Origin: Oculina patagonica
Lineage: Eukaryota
Length of the DNA stretch: 64,000 bases
Reading direction: 5' to 3'
Assembly (NCBI RefSeq): GCF_052425735.1
Contig: NC_135761.1
Span: forward strand, 36,952,001 to 37,016,000
In this document: piece after piece, positions 3,330-64,000 of the stretch
Layout of the letters: the number at the start of each line of letters is the position of its first letter
How positions within the stretch are numbered: the stretch's first letter is position 1
The notes under the pieces: model-generated
Database searches by the model: none
The model's input: the letters and a program-made list of their open reading frames with translations, nothing else
What the model was told of the DNA's origin: nothing
Made by a program: the position numbers and the translations under genes

Positions 3330-4118
3330 GATACGGATGTTTCGATCTATAGAAACTTTTCTGTTTCTCAGTTAGATTGTATCACTTGGGATTTCCCCGC
3401 GGCCTGCTCTTTCTGAAATCTATTATAACAGGTTTCCATTCTAGGCTAACTTCGTGCATGAGTACATTGTTCTCCTCAATTTCATTATGGAGCCAACCGG
3501 CTTCGTGAATAAACTGAAGGGCATCTGCTATTTGTTTAAAAATTTTTTCAAGCTTTTCAAAGACGATTATTTGATGCTTAACTGCCTTACTTCATGAATA
3601 CGACTTACTGCCCTTACCATAAAACTGGGTTATCATTAAATAGGGCATTTCCTTGGCGCAAATGCCCAAAACAATTGGTAAGTTCGGATGGTGATTTTTT
3701 TGAAGCACCAAAATTACTCCAGTTTCTTTTCTGACTTCATACAAGTCGTTCCTCTTGAACTCCCTTACAGCTACAAGACACGAGCTTCCATTGTAGTGCA
3801 TTAGGTGTGTAACTCTGTACGTTCCCTCACCCAGCACTATGTCTTTATCACCGGAGCAGGACAGAAGCGCACAATTCAATTCGGGCACCGTAACTGACCT
3901 GGTCTTTTGGCTTCCAGCATGCACATCTCTTCTACTCGGAAGGACAGCCGATCGACGATTTGGCGTAAGAAAAGTTGTGCGAGGATTCCTGCTAGCAACC
4001 ATTCAAACAATGGTGTGGGCTCTTGTTGGTATTTGCCGCGACAACTGACCAGCGTTCCGAGGAGCCACAGCTGATGACAGTTTTGCTACATTGCAAGGAT
4101 TGCAATTGGTCGATACTT
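3330..4118 (-). pseudogene. Protein kinase relic (subdomains I-VII), copy 1
   Basis: LGEGTY, VAVREF, HHPNLPIVLG, LQFIHEAGWLHNEIEENNVL and IIDFRKS; contains in-frame stops and is truncated before APE. Confidence 0.8.
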
Positions 4119-4129
4119 CAAAAATTATT

Positions 4130-4560
4130 TCTTCTTGTTACTGGCCTCCTCATTTAGGTAGCGCCAACAAATCATGGTATGCCCATTCTTTAAATATCAG
4201 CCCTTAGTTATGTGTTGCTCATGTAAAAAGCCCCATGGGGAAGTGTCACCAAATTATAAAAAATCTATTTTCGCCACCATCTTACAGTATTGGCCTTGCA
4301 AACAGCTTTGTTGTAAGATGAAAGAACAGTTGCTGACTCATTGTTTGTGGAGCAACGACAGAACATGATAAGGTGGCTAAAGCCATCAATGCAGTGATGG
4401 GGCAAGGGATAGAGTAAACATGTCGCTGAATTGCTGGCCTCTTTCATGTCGTCACAGAGGGATCTAAGTCATGTATAGGAGAAGTAACATGTTAACACAG
4501 ATACGAATACCTGCAGGAATTCATTCGCATTTGTCCTGTCTAATCACTCACCAAGAAAAG
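4130..4560 (-). pseudogene. Degenerate DDE integrase-core transposase (IS3EU-like), copy 1
   Basis: Across frames: AIQRHVYSIPCP / HHCIDGFSHLIMFCRCSTNNESATVL / DGGEN. This matches the RRxYSVPxP...HGGIDGFSRLI..L.CSTNN.A.TVL...DxGGEN integrase-core pattern. Confidence 0.65.
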
Positions 4561-56760: not shown

Positions 56761-58161
56761 CTTGTGCCGCGGAATGCCCTGCCTATGCAGAAAACAAAAT
56801 CCTCAGAGATTATTTGGCCAAATTTGATGCTGACAATCTCAGTCCTATACCTATGACCACTGCCTACTTGAAATTAAAGCTGGAGAGTGAACCAACCTGG
56901 AAGTGGCACAGTTGACAAAAGAATATCTAAGCCTTGAAGATGATTTAATAATAATGGATTACAATGGGTTTTGAATATTAGACAACCCAAGCACCGGTGG
57001 TAAAAATTTAACACTTTTGTCAACCTGAAAGCCATAAATATAAAAAGAGTATTATACCTTGGGCTCTGTCCACAGGCATTGATAAAGTGAGGAAGGATGA
57101 AGGCCTAGGGTGAGGGAGGTTGTAAGGCCAGACTGATAGTGTGAGAATTAAACTTGAAAAAAAATAGACTACCGTAAATGATCGATTATATGCCCCAGCG
57201 CTTATTTTTCCTGTTTAAGATGTGGTGCTTATTTCAAATACCTGTAAACACTGACAGGAAAATAGAGAGATGAAGTGAGACGTGTTTGGACAATTTAATA
57301 TTAAATTATTGGGAAAAGACATGTCTTTGCGACAGAAAAATAAGTGCACTTCTCTTTGCCCTGGATGCCATCTCCCGAAAGCAGAACACCGTTTTGGGAC
57401 ATTCACAAAAATTGTAATTGCCCTGATGTTAGTGACTCGTAGAGAATCATGGACGAACTCGGAGCTGCTGCCCTGTTTTACTCGTCAATGTGGAAGTCTC
57501 CACTAAGGTAATGCTGCGCTTCTCCAGGCCATAAGGGTACTCGTTAATCAAGTGGCCGCCTAACAGATCGAGCAGAAATCTCTTCACAAGATTGTGGGTA
57601 AAAAGGGGGGGGGGGGGCGATCCCCAAACAGAGACACCAGCGTGGCAACATCGCAAGATCCACCTTCAGACACAGGTAACGTTCGGCCTATTAAGCCTGG
57701 AGTAAACATACAGACAGGGTATCTTGCCAACTATGCAAGCGTGAGCACCATCTTATACGAGATTCTTCCCTTCACCTGAAGCTGTGGTTGGAGGAGAATA
57801 AGAGCAGCAAGAAAACCGTCTCGTAAATGTCTGGAGACTTAAGTCGACAACAGAAATATGCAAAATGGTGAGCACAGTGTTGCAATGATTTTAGGTGTAC
57901 TTGTTGACCTTGCAAAAATTTGCAAACTCAAAAAGCTATTTAAAAGGCACCTACTGTCGCTTGCATCTACCTGTGAACACGCGCACTCAAAACCATGTTT
58001 TCGAATGACATCAAACGTCAGTGTTGTCAAACTTTGAAGTTTCCCCGCCCAAATTGTGAAGCTTACGTGACTCAAACGTTTCGTTTCATTTATCAAACTT
58101 TGAAGTTTCCACGCCTAAAAGTGAAACTTTCTACTCGAAGTGAGTATGATATATAGCTACT

Positions 58162-61090
58162 ATGATTTTTGTAAACAAAAATGGACGAGATTATCAGAAA
58201 GGCGTCCCACTTTCAAGTGATTTGCGGAATCAAGTGAAAGTACTAGCACAGAATCATCCCTTTTCAGAAGTTGGGCAAAGATTACGCATCAGCAAGAGTG
58301 TTGTTTCAAAAATCGTGAAGCAGTACAACTTGACTGGAAGCACAGCTCCCAAAACGTTGAATCACGTCCGAACAGCTCCAAAATGCAGTTTCCAAGACTC
58401 TATTCTGTTGGAAACCATGGTACAAGCAAGTGCTTCGTCCTCTCTTAAGGAATTACGAGTTTATTTGGCCATTAACGGTGACTGTGGAGAACTTTCAACA
58501 TCAACAATTTCCAGAAATATTAGGAACAGACTTCCAAGTGGCTGCAACTATTCACGAAAAAGGCTAGACAAATGTGCGTCAGAGCGTTTTACTCCCAAAA
58601 ATATAGTGTACACTCAGTTGTATATTGACCATTTAAAAGACAAAGATCCTTCCTCTGTTAAGTTTTTTGATGAGTCTGGTTTTCAGCTGCCTGATGCCGG
58701 TCACAGAAACTATTGTTTCTTACCTGTCGGTGACGGTTGCGTTGAATTGCGAAGATACTTGTCTACCGCGAACCTCACGCTAAACTTTCTGGTTAGATTT
58801 TATGGAGTTAAGTATGGAAACGTCATAGAAGGAGCGTCGAACTCTGTACAGTTTTTACAATTCTTTGATGAGGCCTCGCAAACAGTTGATCCAATAACGC
58901 AACGACCAATTATCGAAGTCGGCGACACTGTAGTGGTAGACAATCTTGCCGCACATCATGGCGAAGCGGAAAGAGCGCTGCGAAGCTTCCTGAATGATCT
59001 GGGGATGGAGCTCGTTTTTCTCCCAGTGTATTCTCCAGACCTTAATCCTGTCGAGGAGGTATTTTCAAAGCTGAAATATTTGTTGAAGGACAAATACCGG
59101 GAACTACAATCCTCGTCAATACCCTTAGGAAGGTCGTCAAGTTTTCGCTCCCCTTCCTCCTCATTCAATGTTGAAGTCTACCTACAGACTTCAATCACAG
59201 CATATTGTCTATAATGTCTATAATGTTCAGAAATACTTCAACATTGATATGGGGGAGAGGGGGGGCCAAACATCTTGTGTAGGTACCTAGAGACTACATT
59301 TATGTCGAAGTTTTTGAAATTGCGGTGTATATGTGCAACCTTCCCAAGAGGTTATGTCTGGGATTGTATGTGAAATGACTGGGCGTTGTAGTACATCTCG
59401 GGGTCTTTACGGACTGAATTGAAAGTGTTACATGCAATCTTAGTGGATGAAATTTTCAGACGATGTTGTGTATTACCAGGCACTTTCTCCAAAGTAAACA
59501 TAATTAATTTTTCATTAAATAAAATTGGAGTGTGACGAGTTGATCGACGGGTGGAAATTATTGTTGTTTTCACAACATTGGAATTAAGAGATGTTAAATG
59601 TGAGATGGAAATTCATACAGTTTTGGCGACCAATTCCACCAGCTGAGCAGTGAAACTTGGTACCGTGTGGACACTGCTTTCCTCGCTTAGTTTTGGACAA
59701 CATCGAATAATAAATGTTATCTCTATTGTAAGCTGTCAACACCTTGTTAACAAGTTGTGTATCGCAGACAACAGTACTCCGGGAAAATACAACAGTACTC
59801 CATTAATGTTTCAGAAATTATAGCACTCGGAGTTGATTTAACAGGAAAGTATGTGGACATGGTTAATGTTTATAAAGAAATGTTTCGTTGCAATGAAACT
59901 TGAAGTACATGTTGCTTTATTAAGGGGAAAGCACACAGTACTCCATCAAAACAAGGTATTGCAATGTTATTATTCACATTATCTTTTAAACTCGAGTTTT
60001 CAATGGAGTACTGTTCAAAATCACTCAAAAACGTTACTGCAAGATAAAAGCTCCGTCTCACTTGCTTGGAGTTTCACTGCCTGACTTATAGTTAAGAAAA
60101 GCTGCATTAAATATCTTAAAATAGCGTTCTTTGGCGCGATTTTCTCATGGAGAACTGTGGAGTACTGTGAGACGAAATGTTTACAGTGTAATTAAGTTTA
60201 CTATTCCTTGCCTGCGAGAAGTCACGGAAACTGTTCACAACGTTCGCATACGGTAAATAATAATGTCACTTGGAAACAACTATGGCATTGTCCCTAGTGT
60301 TCTTTAAAGAGCGCAATAACACTGAACTAAAGATACCAAATCCCAAAAACGAATAATTCCACCCTTCTACTCCGAAGATGTTTATGTTAACTCTCCTTAC
60401 TGGCTGTATACATTTCTTTAAATGTTAGTTCGGAGAAATGAGACATGAAGAGAACAGTTTCAGTATTTTCAGTATTTTACGTTGGTTTTTGACGTCTTAA
60501 CCAAATTAGTTACACACTCCATACAGGTAAATGTTTATAAACATCAGAACATGTCACGCAATAACAACACCGCTTTTAAACCGTCTTTCACCTAATCGGT
60601 AGTTTTTATTGCTTCAACTTACAACTTGACCAAAAGAAAGAATATACTATATCTCTTGACCACACCAAACTTCAGCTTTATAGCGTACATAGTTTTTTGG
60701 TTATGGAATATTTTATGCTCTATGTCTGATTCAGACAATCCTCGTCAATACCCTTAGGAAGGTCGTCAAGTTTTCGCTCCCCTTCCCCCCTCATTCAATG
60801 TTGAAGTCTACCTACAGACCTAAATCACAGCATATTGTCTAACATAATGTTCAGAAATACTTCAACATTGATATGGGGGAGAGGGGGGCCAAACATCTTG
60901 TGTAGGTACCTAGAGACTACATTTATGTCGAAGTTTTTGAAATTGCGGTGTATATGTGCAACCTTCCCAAGAGGTTATGTCTGGGATTGTAGTATGGGAA
61001 AACCTGGAATACGCACTGTTGAGAGAAATTGGGGATGTAACAGCGGCTGATATGTACGGCTACTACAAGCATGTTGGTTATTTTATTTGA
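58162..61090 (+). CDS. DD37E transposase (paired-like HTH plus DDE_3), interrupted; 58162-59106 joined to 60992-61090 gives 347 aa
   Basis: FFDESGF; VVVDNLAAHH...FLPVYSPDLNPVEE with 37 residues between D and E. The C-terminus VWENLEYALLREIGDVTAADMYGYYKHVGYFI* resumes in frame after the insertion. Confidence 0.92.
59107..60989. mobile_element. Composite insertion: MITE copy (59107-59366), 1369-bp cargo, MITE copy (60736-60989); TA target duplication
   Basis: Two near-identical direct repeats, each bounded by imperfect TIRs (CAATCCTCGTCAATACCCTTAGGAAGG / CCTTCCCAAGAGGTTATGTCTGGGATTG). TA lies at 59105-59106 and 60990-60991. Confidence 0.9.
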
Positions 61091-61425
61091 GAAATCAAAC
61101 TGTAATTTTGGACAAAACGGTTAGTATTTTACTATTGCCATGGACGAGTATAAGAAATAGAGTGAAATATTGTAGTCATCTGAGCCAGAACTGAAGTTAG
61201 AAACGTTTGTACTACATGTACCCTAGTTTGCTAGTAATTTGTTTACTGAACTGTTCAGCAGCGTTTATATTCGACAAATTTTGCTTTGTAATTGTCACAA
61301 TATGTAATGCGAAAATCTGAAATTAAAAAGGCCTGTTGCCTAACACAATTCCAAATGTATTGTTCAACTGTTTTTGCACACAGGTGTTTTACAAAGTATT
61401 CATCCCTTGCATGAAATACCAGTAG

Positions 61426-61773
61426 CCCAGGGGGGTACTCTTGGGTCCAAGTGACGGGGATGTGCGAAGGATTTTTTTGGGGTCGAAATTTTCAATTCTG
61501 GGATTTTTTGGGTAGGAGAATTTGGCAGGTATTTTTTTGGGTGACTTGATTTAAATAGGGGATTTTTTTGGGGTATTAAAATCAAACTAAAGTGCCTTAG
61601 CGCGGCCTTGGCAATTTAGGGGTAATTTGACTAGTGATTTTTTTGGCCGTTTTTTTTTTTTGGTCCAGGGATTTTTTTGGGTAATGTCGGAAAACTTAGG
61701 GATTTTTTTGGGTCCTGAGTTTTGCCTCCATTCGATCATCCCCGTCACTTTGATCCCGGAGTACCCCCCTGGG
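61426..61773. mobile_element. MITE with CCC...GGG ends and 2-bp AG target duplication (CMC/EnSpm-like)
   Basis: AG-CCCAGGGGGGTACTC...GAGTACCCCCCTGGG-AG, with internal GGATTTTTTTGGG repeats. Confidence 0.85.
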
Positions 61774-62522
61774 AGTCACGGTTGTGTTAATTTACTTTTT
61801 AGTATACTGTCAGTTTGACCTAAGGTACTAGCCGCGCCACAACTTAGTACAGAAGAATCCATGAAGTAATCACAATAAAATATTGTCTAATAGTTTGTTT
61901 AAATTTATTGAATTTATCTCAATATCTGAGAAAACGGGTTAGTTAATTCTCCACTAGCTAAGTTTGTGTAAAAACGTACACATGCGAATAAACCATGCAC
62001 CGGTATGCAAATTCGACAACAAATGAATTTTCTGTTTTAAAAACATTCTTACATTTACTGCTTAAACTGGGAAAAAAGGAATTAAACAATTCGAAAACTA
62101 GCCTTGATTTTACACAATAACATTATTAACAATAACAGTAAAATTATTAACAATAACAGTAAATTTATTAACGGTAGAACACGCATGTGGTTAGGAAAAA
62201 TACAACACAGTCAAAGTTTCATTTAAGGACAGAAAATTCTGTGTTGGCCGCTTCTTTTGTTCCGTGTCATCTCTATTGTCAATTTATTGAATTGAAGCGT
62301 ATATGAGGCAACGCTTAGTTTTTGTATATAAACGTACACTTGCGAAAAATGACTATCGATGTGCCTTTTCGACAACAAATGAAAGATTTTTTCTTTCACA
62401 ACATCCTAACATTTACCGCGGAAATGTCGACTAGTTGTGATCTTACAATTCTTACGGTAAAAGCATTAACGCTAAAATAGCACAAAAGCTAGTTAAAATA
62501 CCACACAAAGTCAAAGTTTCAT

Positions 62523-63751
62523 TTATTCCTTCAAAGACTTGAAGGTCAGCAAAATATTGGCCGCTTCTTCTGTTTGTTCTGTGTGATCTCCATCATGGCC
62601 GGCAGAAGGATCAGAACCAAGAGACAACTTTTTAGCCATGTAAAGCTGCTCTTCCTCTTTCTCTGGTGTGTTAGGCGACAAGCAGAAACTGGTTGAGCTA
62701 GTAAAATTTCGCCGATCAGGGAAAGTTACACCGTAGCTCTCCAGTCGGACTCTGGTTTGCGAGCAACTTTCAGTAGTTGAGCTGTTTGCGGCGGCGTCAC
62801 GTTCTGGAAGAGTTGGAAGGCTGAGGCGCTTGTCGGAATTTTTCCTCTCAAGGAGAGACTTCACAATTTCTCGTCGAGGGGGTCCACTGGCCTCAATGAT
62901 TTCTTCACAAACGCAATGTCTTGCTGAATTTTTAGCCAGTTTCTTGATTTATTCTGGACATATTCTTCTGGGTATTCTTCAAGCAGCATGTCTTCCAGTT
63001 GTTTGTTAACAGACCCATGCACTCTATCAAAAGCTGCCTCCCGAGACCTTAGTTCTTGTTCTAGTTTAGTTGCTGATGTTTCTAATGCTTTTATTTTGTT
63101 CTTCTGCTCTTGAAGCTTCATCTTTTCGTCAGGATGTCGAGTTATTTCGCCACAAAAAAATGCTGACTTGCACTTTTCCATCTGACAACTGCAAACAGTA
63201 TGGTTTTTGTAATGGCAATTACTACATCGTTGGCCGGTAAGGTTATTTCTAGAAGAAGCCTCCTTTATTCTTCGGTTTTGGTCTTCGAGCACTTTTCGTT
63301 TTTCAGCTGCTTTTGCAAGTTTTTCCTCAATGGCGCGGCATTTTTCTTTGATAAATCGTTCTCCAGGGGACAGTAATCTCCGTCTACTTGTTGGGTGCGA
63401 GTCTTTGGTTTCAAATTGCGACCTTTGAGCTTCTTGTCCAACACTAGTCTCGTCTACAGTCAAAACAGTTTTTTTCCTCGCTGGGGATTTCGATGGACTT
63501 TTCTCTGAGGATGAGGAGAAGCTGAACTCAGCTTGAGGCCTTCCACGGTTCTGTATCGGCGTTCTGAGTCAGCCTACCATATTTAAAATGAGCCGTTTAT
63601 GCCCTTCAGGAATGGCAGCAAGATCATTCTCTCTAAGATACCTCGCGCTCGCAGTGCTCGTGAAGCCATTGCTTCTCAATTCACCGGCATAAACTAACAA
63701 ATCCTCGTCAACTTCTTTTAGAAAGTTTTCTATGCTTTTTCGATACTCCAT
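62523..63751 (-). pseudogene. Transposon ORF2 (~409 codons): SAM-like N-terminus, Cys/His knuckle, coiled coils; one premature stop and one frameshift
   Basis: ORFs 63569-63751 and 62861-63463 are in the same frame, separated only by the TGA at 63569-63571. A frameshift near 62870 leads into 62523-62864. Confidence 0.8.
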
Positions 63752-64000
63752 ATTCCTCAGATTTTCTTGACTTCTGCGACAATTTTAATGAGTGGACCAC
63801 GGATCACAAAAACACAACTCTGCCAAGCAAACTTCACATTTGGGCGGGGAAAGGTCAAAGTTTGATAAATGGAACGTAGACGTTTGAGTGACGTAAGCTT
63901 CGCAATTTGGGCGAAGAAACTTCAAAGTTTGACAGCTGAAACCCTGACGTTTGACGTCATTTGAAAACATGTTTGGAGCGTGTGCGCTCACAGGTAGATG

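Follow-up and report, generated by a model that had tools for sequence, protein, structure and literature searches.

A probable non-autonomous member of a cnidarian DNA-transposon family with long terminal direct repeats, a Tc1-type transposase and a virus-type Rep, in the genome of Oculina patagonica

The DNA analyzed here, hereafter the window, is a stretch of 64,000 nucleotides of the coral Oculina patagonica (assembly GCF_052425735.1, contig NC_135761.1, positions 36,952,001 to 37,016,000 of the forward strand). Towards its right end a transposase gene, the host gene, is interrupted by an insert at 59107-60989, which consists of two copies of a long terminal direct repeat (LTDR), resembling miniature inverted-repeat transposable elements (MITEs), and an interior of 1369 bp between them. 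Related loci from other assemblies, to which the features are compared, are numbered L001 to L019. The features of the locus are the following:

58162-59106, plus strand: first 315 codons of the host gene, a PAX/HTH and DDE_3 (DD37E) transposase (Pfam, homologues)
59105-59106, no strand: left copy of the duplicated TA target (sequence; one TA in the uninterrupted relative L001)
59107-59366, plus strand: left LTDR (LTDR1), MITE-like, 260 bp, alignable over its full length with the L008 and L006 repeats; its own inverted ends lie at 59107-59136 and 59337-59366
59141-59271, plus strand: hairpin in LTDR1, made up of a C-rich arm, the stem CAATGTTGA...TCAACATTG and a G-rich arm (inverted repeat, DNA fold)
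59367-59581, plus strand: 5' part of the interior, homologous to the sequence upstream of Rep (alignments with L008 3173-2955 and L006 276-498)
59582-59710, plus strand: Rep gene remnant, the last 42 codons with one in-frame stop (tblastn)
59771-60168, no strand: site cluster, five exact and one near ACAGTACTCC sites in the order + + + - - -, in the region between the 3' ends of both genes
60169-60474, no strand: remainder of the 3'-3' intergenic region as far as the transposase stop (alignable with L008 to about 862)
60475-60735, plus strand: 3' part of the interior, homologous to the sequence upstream of the transposase (alignments with L008 3687-3432, L006 1399-1646 and L003 594-798)
60736-60989, plus strand: right LTDR (LTDR2), 254 bp (repeat comparison); its own inverted ends lie at 60736-60765 and 60960-60989 and its hairpin spans 60779-60887
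60990-60991, no strand: right copy of the duplicated TA target (sequence; L001 comparison)
60992-61090, plus strand: last 32 codons and stop of the host gene (colinear with homologues over the break)

The two parts of the host open reading frame (ORF) together encode a transposase recognized by Pfam profiles as a PAX/HTH and DDE_3 protein of the DD37E type, and the gene is part of a ~6-kb element with long terminal inverted repeats that occupies the end of the window. An earlier note on this DNA had held that deletion of 59107-60991 restores the frame of this gene, which is confirmed by five homologous transposases (60-85% identical) that run colinearly over the insertion point with no gap. 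It is further confirmed by an empty site in L001, a long contig from a cnidarian-holobiont assembly in which a relative of the host element is uninterrupted and has just one TA precisely where the break lies. Given this empty site and the colinear host protein, the event is demonstrated to be a precise insertion into a single TA with duplication of that dinucleotide: TA abuts both outer ends of the insert and the gain at the site amounts to a precisely placed 1883 bp plus one TA.

The same note had described the bracketing sequences as direct repeats of 260 and 254 bp, each with imperfect inverted ends of its own, with TA on the outer ends and, on the inner ends, TA after the first copy and GA before the second; all of this holds. 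The two LTDRs are direct copies with 95.0% identity over 261 columns, and both open with CAATCC and close with GGATTG within imperfect inverted ends of ~30 bp. Their differences (13 alignment columns) are confined to the first ~155 bp and mostly affect C and G homopolymer runs and a 9-bp slippage repeat, while the final 109 bp are identical. Gene conversion was considered as the cause of this clustering in the 5' half and rejected, as the slippage-prone runs explain it better. Neither the LTDR nor its 27-nt end sequence recurs within the 64-kb window (0 occurrences expected by chance), a 12-nt match to the repeat end at 63700 being at chance level for a region of such size. The hairpin of LTDR1 is well supported by DNA folding (z = -4.8), and an equivalent hairpin is present in the repeats of L008, L010, L006 and L018 (fold z-scores -3.6 to -5.4 overall), being kept even where the remaining repeat sequence ceases to align between relatives. 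No nick motif was picked out in this conserved hairpin, Rfam searches with it returned only sub-threshold miRNA-like matches and no tRNA, and the translated ORF of the MITE-like repeat recovered no relatives.

The relatives were reached via a 77-codon ORF of the interior, which recovered two proteins whose contigs share 80-90% identical DNA with this part of the element; a 22-mer unchanged among all these sequences then retrieved five more contigs from JGI metagenomes. The related loci are 58-90% identical to the window element and have different flanks, and their comparison demonstrates a family-wide layout of repeat, interior and repeat. The linear contig L006/L007 shows a left repeat, a homologous interior and a right repeat with an 85-bp deletion, followed by TA; its left flank is an unreliable T-rich contig end, and only the right TA was used. 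In L008 a single repeat lies between the homologues of the end and the start of the window interior, i.e. between the 5' ends of a Rep gene and a transposase gene, and the identity of its first and last 120 nt closes it as a 4107-bp unit. The Logan contig L010 has a comparable form: its Rep and transposase genes are both intact and diverge from a MITE-like segment of 254 bp, and a 30-nt overlap closes the contig. The most complete picture comes from L018 (= L019), which was found in two samples, in long-read contigs measuring 663 kb and 22 kb. Here a TA is followed by a 266-bp repeat, then TC, a Rep gene of 449 aa on the plus strand, a transposase gene of 364 aa on the minus strand, GA, a 265-bp repeat and again TA, and the two end repeats differ by one G only. 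Full-length members are thus ~4.3 kb in length, with two convergent genes between LTDRs. Across the family the repeats measure 254-268 bp, and in L008 and L018 they have near-perfect inverted ends of 27 bp. The inner junctions GA/CAATC and GATTG/TC recur in L006, L008, L010 and L018: GA precedes the second repeat in every lineage and TC follows the first repeat everywhere but in the window, which has TA. The inner dinucleotides are features of the family and not decayed target duplications. One further locus, L017, is a Rep-only derivative with a truncated repeat at its end followed by TA; an array of ~146-bp tandem repeats (L017 7700-9120) lies immediately past this truncated right repeat.

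The gene content of the full-length relatives is also demonstrated. L008 encodes a 444-residue Rep, which itself shows the HUH, YxxK and Walker A/B motifs, and a Tc1-like transposase; these are its only long ORFs with family matches, and the gene calls in L010 and L018 agree. No capsid gene was found among these family-matched long ORFs of L008, the other ORFs of >=60 aa, short or overlapping, having been left unscanned. An alignment of 20 full-length members of the Rep family, which comprises 2714 cluster representatives at E ≤ 0.001, revealed the conserved HUH histidines, the catalytic Tyr/Lys motif (YxxK), and a P-loop with Walker A/B motifs. Pfam matches among these 20 members were to REP_ORF2-G2P (10/20), Parvo_NS1 (8/20) and Gemini_AL1 (3/20), the profile of the family gave a weak match to solved Rep structures, and its neighbors in the protein atlas are cnidarian "replication-associated" clusters and the parvovirus NS1. 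The Rep of the full-length relatives is hence an HUH-endonuclease and superfamily 3 (SF3)-helicase protein; that of L010 is 53% identical to that of L008. In the transposases of L008, L010 and L018, 34 residues separate the second Asp from the Glu, and the family transposase is therefore of the DD34E Tc1 type, fitting the TA target. Consistent with this, the L008 protein matches DDE_3 (E=7e-15) and HTH_23 in Pfam, and L010 and L018 have single intact transposase ORFs of 368 and 364 codons. The L008 transposase (3928-4179 and 117-887) is split in two frames near residues 81-93, possible causes being a frameshift, a short intron or faulty assembly. Rep homologues also occur on Tara-type contigs (L011-L016); these short contigs have no transposase and are uninformative on the layout. 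Three of them, the ~2.5-kb marine metagenome contigs L012-L014, encode an intact 446-codon Rep of the same family, 42% identical. It was met in three independent assemblies of plankton, more than 99% identical among them, on a contig without a transposase; the family may extend beyond the transposase-linked lineage.

Comparison with these genes clarifies the nature of the window interior, which the earlier note had taken to be non-coding. This needs correction, since the interior carries the 42-codon Rep remnant, which is 83% identical to residues 403-444 of the L008 Rep (tblastn). Rep codons ~1-403 are deleted with a junction at 59588/59589 (~1.2 kb missing relative to L008), and the entire transposase coding region is gone with a junction near 60470-60478 (~1.3 kb missing relative to L008), no transposase remnant being detected in the window copy by tblastn with the L008 proteins. 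Microhomology at the deletion junctions is not resolvable given the 25-30% divergence from L008. Every non-coding part has been kept, namely the end repeats with their hairpin, both promoter-side regions and the ACAGTACTC cluster, alongside the 42-codon Rep tail. Pfam searches with the ORFs of the interior gave no significant match (the sole one listed, Piwi_N, had E = 0.042 and 14.5 bits against a cut-off of 27), and bacterial promoter and terminator scans stayed at chance level. The breakpoints differ among the window copy, L006/L003 and L005/L009, and non-autonomous copies therefore arose several times. In the derivative seen in L005 and L009, the 3' end of Rep and four site motifs are joined directly to the first 50 transposase codons; the homology of these contigs to L008 ends within the region upstream of the transposase, before any end repeat.

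A distinctive component of the interior is the cluster of sites with the ACAGTACTC core, which is placed between the 3' ends of both genes and arranged as + + + and then -. The window copy has five exact sites and one near site, L002-L009 four to six, L010 five of a variant form and L018 four; the sites are invariant in L002-L009 and identical in core in L018. Against a chance expectation of 0.015 per kb, none occurs elsewhere in the window. Inverted similarity around the cluster beyond the sites themselves is not significant (z about 3, within the shuffle range). Scans of viral contigs with the site motif and with Rep gave no match, as was also the case for the repeat end sequences in scans of viral contigs and JGI metagenomes. 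The retention of the cluster in every deletion derivative suggests a need for it in cis.

These observations make it likely that the insert at 59107-60989 belongs, as a non-autonomous copy with two deletions, to a family of cnidarian DNA transposons built as LTDR, interior and LTDR. The earlier note had offered a TA-targeting family with terminal direct repeats as one of two readings and had proposed a search for longer versions encoding a transposase. L008, L010 and L018 are such versions, encoding the DD34E transposase together with Rep, and the full-length, TA-flanked copy in the long-read contig L018 adds to the support for the family. The TA duplication, which is seen around both the window element and the L018 copy, the terminal inverted repeats and the DDE_3 DD34E transposase of the relatives are all traits of Tc1/mariner elements. 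We infer that the family transposase, acting in trans, would bind to the inverted ends of the LTDRs and bring together the two outermost ends, that of the left repeat and that of the right, such that the unit would be pasted as a whole into a TA of the DD37E host gene with duplication of the TA. Some points weigh against this assignment. No second copy of the repeat or of the 1369-bp interior occurs within the window. Moreover, the window repeats differ by 5%, and therefore either the insertion is not very recent or an already diverged unit moved.

Whether the whole 1.88 kb arrived together, as had been proposed, is a narrower question; arrival as one piece is probable, if less firmly so than membership of the family. 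The qualification stems from a two-step origin that would yield the same final structure and leave the TA duplication unchanged, in which a solo repeat (a MITE) first entered the TA and a circle of repeat and interior later recombined into it, either homologously or by the action of Rep, with no one-piece movement. An equivalent route has been proposed for KolobokP (PMC9587614), the family Rep is of the circle-replicating kind, and the short-read copies L008 and L010 assemble as closed units, circles or tandems of 4.1-4.2 kb with one repeat. However, this closure is no proof of circles because short-read assembly collapses identical end repeats into a cycle, so that circular assembly is equally expected from an integrated unit. 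Solo repeats, the required first step, were absent from the ~100 kb of DNA examined, and simple transposition suffices for the full unit of L018, with its near-identical repeats and TA on both sides. The two-step route is accordingly unlikely.

The other reading of the earlier note, a one-off composite transposition in which two neighboring independent MITEs moved together with the host DNA between them, does resemble the layout of bacterial composite transposons and Ac/Ds macrotransposons (PMC3260210), and the TA that follows LTDR1 could be read in its favor. It is nevertheless refuted by the conservation of the interior and of both inner junctions in four or more diverged lineages known from other assemblies, which are not contamination from the window locus (58-90% identical, with different flanks). 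The interior is made of the remains of Rep and transposase genes and not of unrelated host sequence, and the inner GA is a family feature rather than a mutated TA, so that there are no target duplications for each element; a composite of this kind is thus very improbable.

An equally improbable proposal is that the HUH Rep inserted the unit by a rolling-circle route in the manner of Helitrons. The family does encode such a Rep and each repeat contains a conserved hairpin, but the exact TA duplication, the inverted ends and the co-resident DD34E transposase form the signature of Tc1-type cut-and-paste transposition, whereas Helitron-type insertion makes no target duplication. Finally, 260-bp repeats are able to mislead assemblers, but a false expansion of a single MITE through misjoined reads is hardly credible for LTDR copies that differ at 13 alignment columns, and are hence not a collapsed duplicate, and for a layout found again in independent assemblies, among them the long-read contigs of two samples.

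Beyond cut-and-paste transposition as a unit, the gene content of the family raises the tentative and rather doubtful possibility that it leads a double life as transposon and episome, i.e. that it is a capsid-less virus-like replicon using a Tc1 transposase as its integrase. Each LTDR would then carry the ends recognized by the transposase plus, in its hairpin, a Rep origin, and an integrated copy of repeat, interior and repeat would constitute a built-in partial dimer. From this Rep might release a unit-length circle and replicate it by the rolling-circle mechanism, and concatemers of the circle could in turn supply the transposase with a repeat-interior-repeat substrate for insertion at TA. 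The ACAGTACTC sites would be putative binding sites of Rep or the transposase required in cis, which, if true, would explain their retention by every deletion derivative. The window element may, in this sense, possibly be the remnant of a transposon-replicon hybrid.

Two further elements were observed at the locus. The inverted ends of the host element (57954-64000) are long (~170 bp) and structured and contain sub-repeats of ~66 bp. The element holds a second, convergent ORF of 200 codons without a Pfam family, and on the right it ends together with the window (64000). Just downstream of the stop of the host transposase lies a small nested element of 348 bp (61426-61773) with 43-nt inverted ends that are 86% complementary (CCCAGGGGGGTACTC...), internal GATTTTTTTGGG repeats and no obvious target duplication.

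Among known systems, KolobokP is the only DNA-transposon lineage described with repeats of this type, and its authors call the layout unlike that of other DNA transposons (PMC9587614). As in the coral family, an interior that codes for a DDD/E transposase plus a second, nuclease-type enzyme lies between long terminal direct repeats, each of which has short inverted ends itself; non-autonomous derivatives of 1.7-3.3 kb with deletions are described, and circular or multimeric forms of repeat plus interior are discussed (PMC9587614). The likeness to KolobokP drawn in the earlier note thus stands as an analogy of layout but not in the defining Kolobok features. The target duplication is TA in the coral family and TTAA in KolobokP, the termini are CA...TG as against 5'-RR...YY-3', and the repeats measure 254-268 bp as against ~450 or ~660 bp. 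Similarly, the transposase is a Tc1-like DDE_3 (DD34E) enzyme in place of the Kolobok DDD/E version, and its partner is an HUH and SF3-helicase Rep in place of a His-Me homing endonuclease. The hosts differ too, the coral family being found in cnidarians, a phylum absent from the KolobokP host list (PMC9587614).

These elements are instead reminiscent of Tc1/mariner transposons and Stowaway-like MITEs: they duplicate a TA target, their inverted ends begin with CA, their DD34E DDE_3 transposase has a helix-turn-helix at the N terminus, and there are non-autonomous copies with internal deletions. However, ordinary Tc1/mariner elements have one pair of inverted ends and one gene, whereas the ends of the coral family are whole 260-bp direct repeats, each of which holds both end types, and the Rep gene is a stable partner of the transposase. 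A partial precedent for this pairing is the repeated element of Tuber melanosporum, in which ORFs for a geminivirus-like Rep and a transposase are bounded by inverted repeats (PMC3198968). This fungal element differs in its geminivirus-like Rep and its 37-bp terminal inverted repeats, and has no evident target duplication and no terminal direct repeats (PMC3198968). Composite transposons, Ac-Ds macrotransposons and the FB-flanked Ising TE also present two element copies in direct order and use the outermost ends as a pair, but these are opportunistic pairs around arbitrary host DNA, whereas in the coral family the pairing is inherited, as is the interior. The literature searched, which did not cover Repbase, yielded no account of a Tc1-type element that has both Rep and terminal direct repeats.

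With regard to replicons, the placement of a Rep gene between direct hairpin-bearing segments recalls the partial dimers of a 1991 study on replicational release, as related in PMC4148390, according to which such an arrangement lets Rep release unit-length circles; for the coral family this is an analogy only. Single-stranded DNA (ssDNA) replicons of the CRESS and parvovirus-like kinds share the HUH and SF3 Rep of the full-length relatives, of which the window copy keeps 42 codons. Helitrons, in contrast, encode a RepHel with a PIF1-type helicase and lack inverted ends, whereas the coral family combines an SF3 helicase, inverted ends and a TA duplication. The family links cut-and-paste transposons with Rep-encoding ssDNA replicons in animals, and its natural intact copies make this idea testable. 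In genome annotation, such units will be mistaken for a pair of MITEs with unique DNA or, in short-read metagenomes, for circular viral contigs. Taken together with KolobokP, the coral family suggests that there is selection for the LTDR layout where a transposase is paired with an enzyme of DNA nicking or replication; this layout has arisen also in the Tc1/mariner superfamily, here with a virus-type Rep as the second enzyme.

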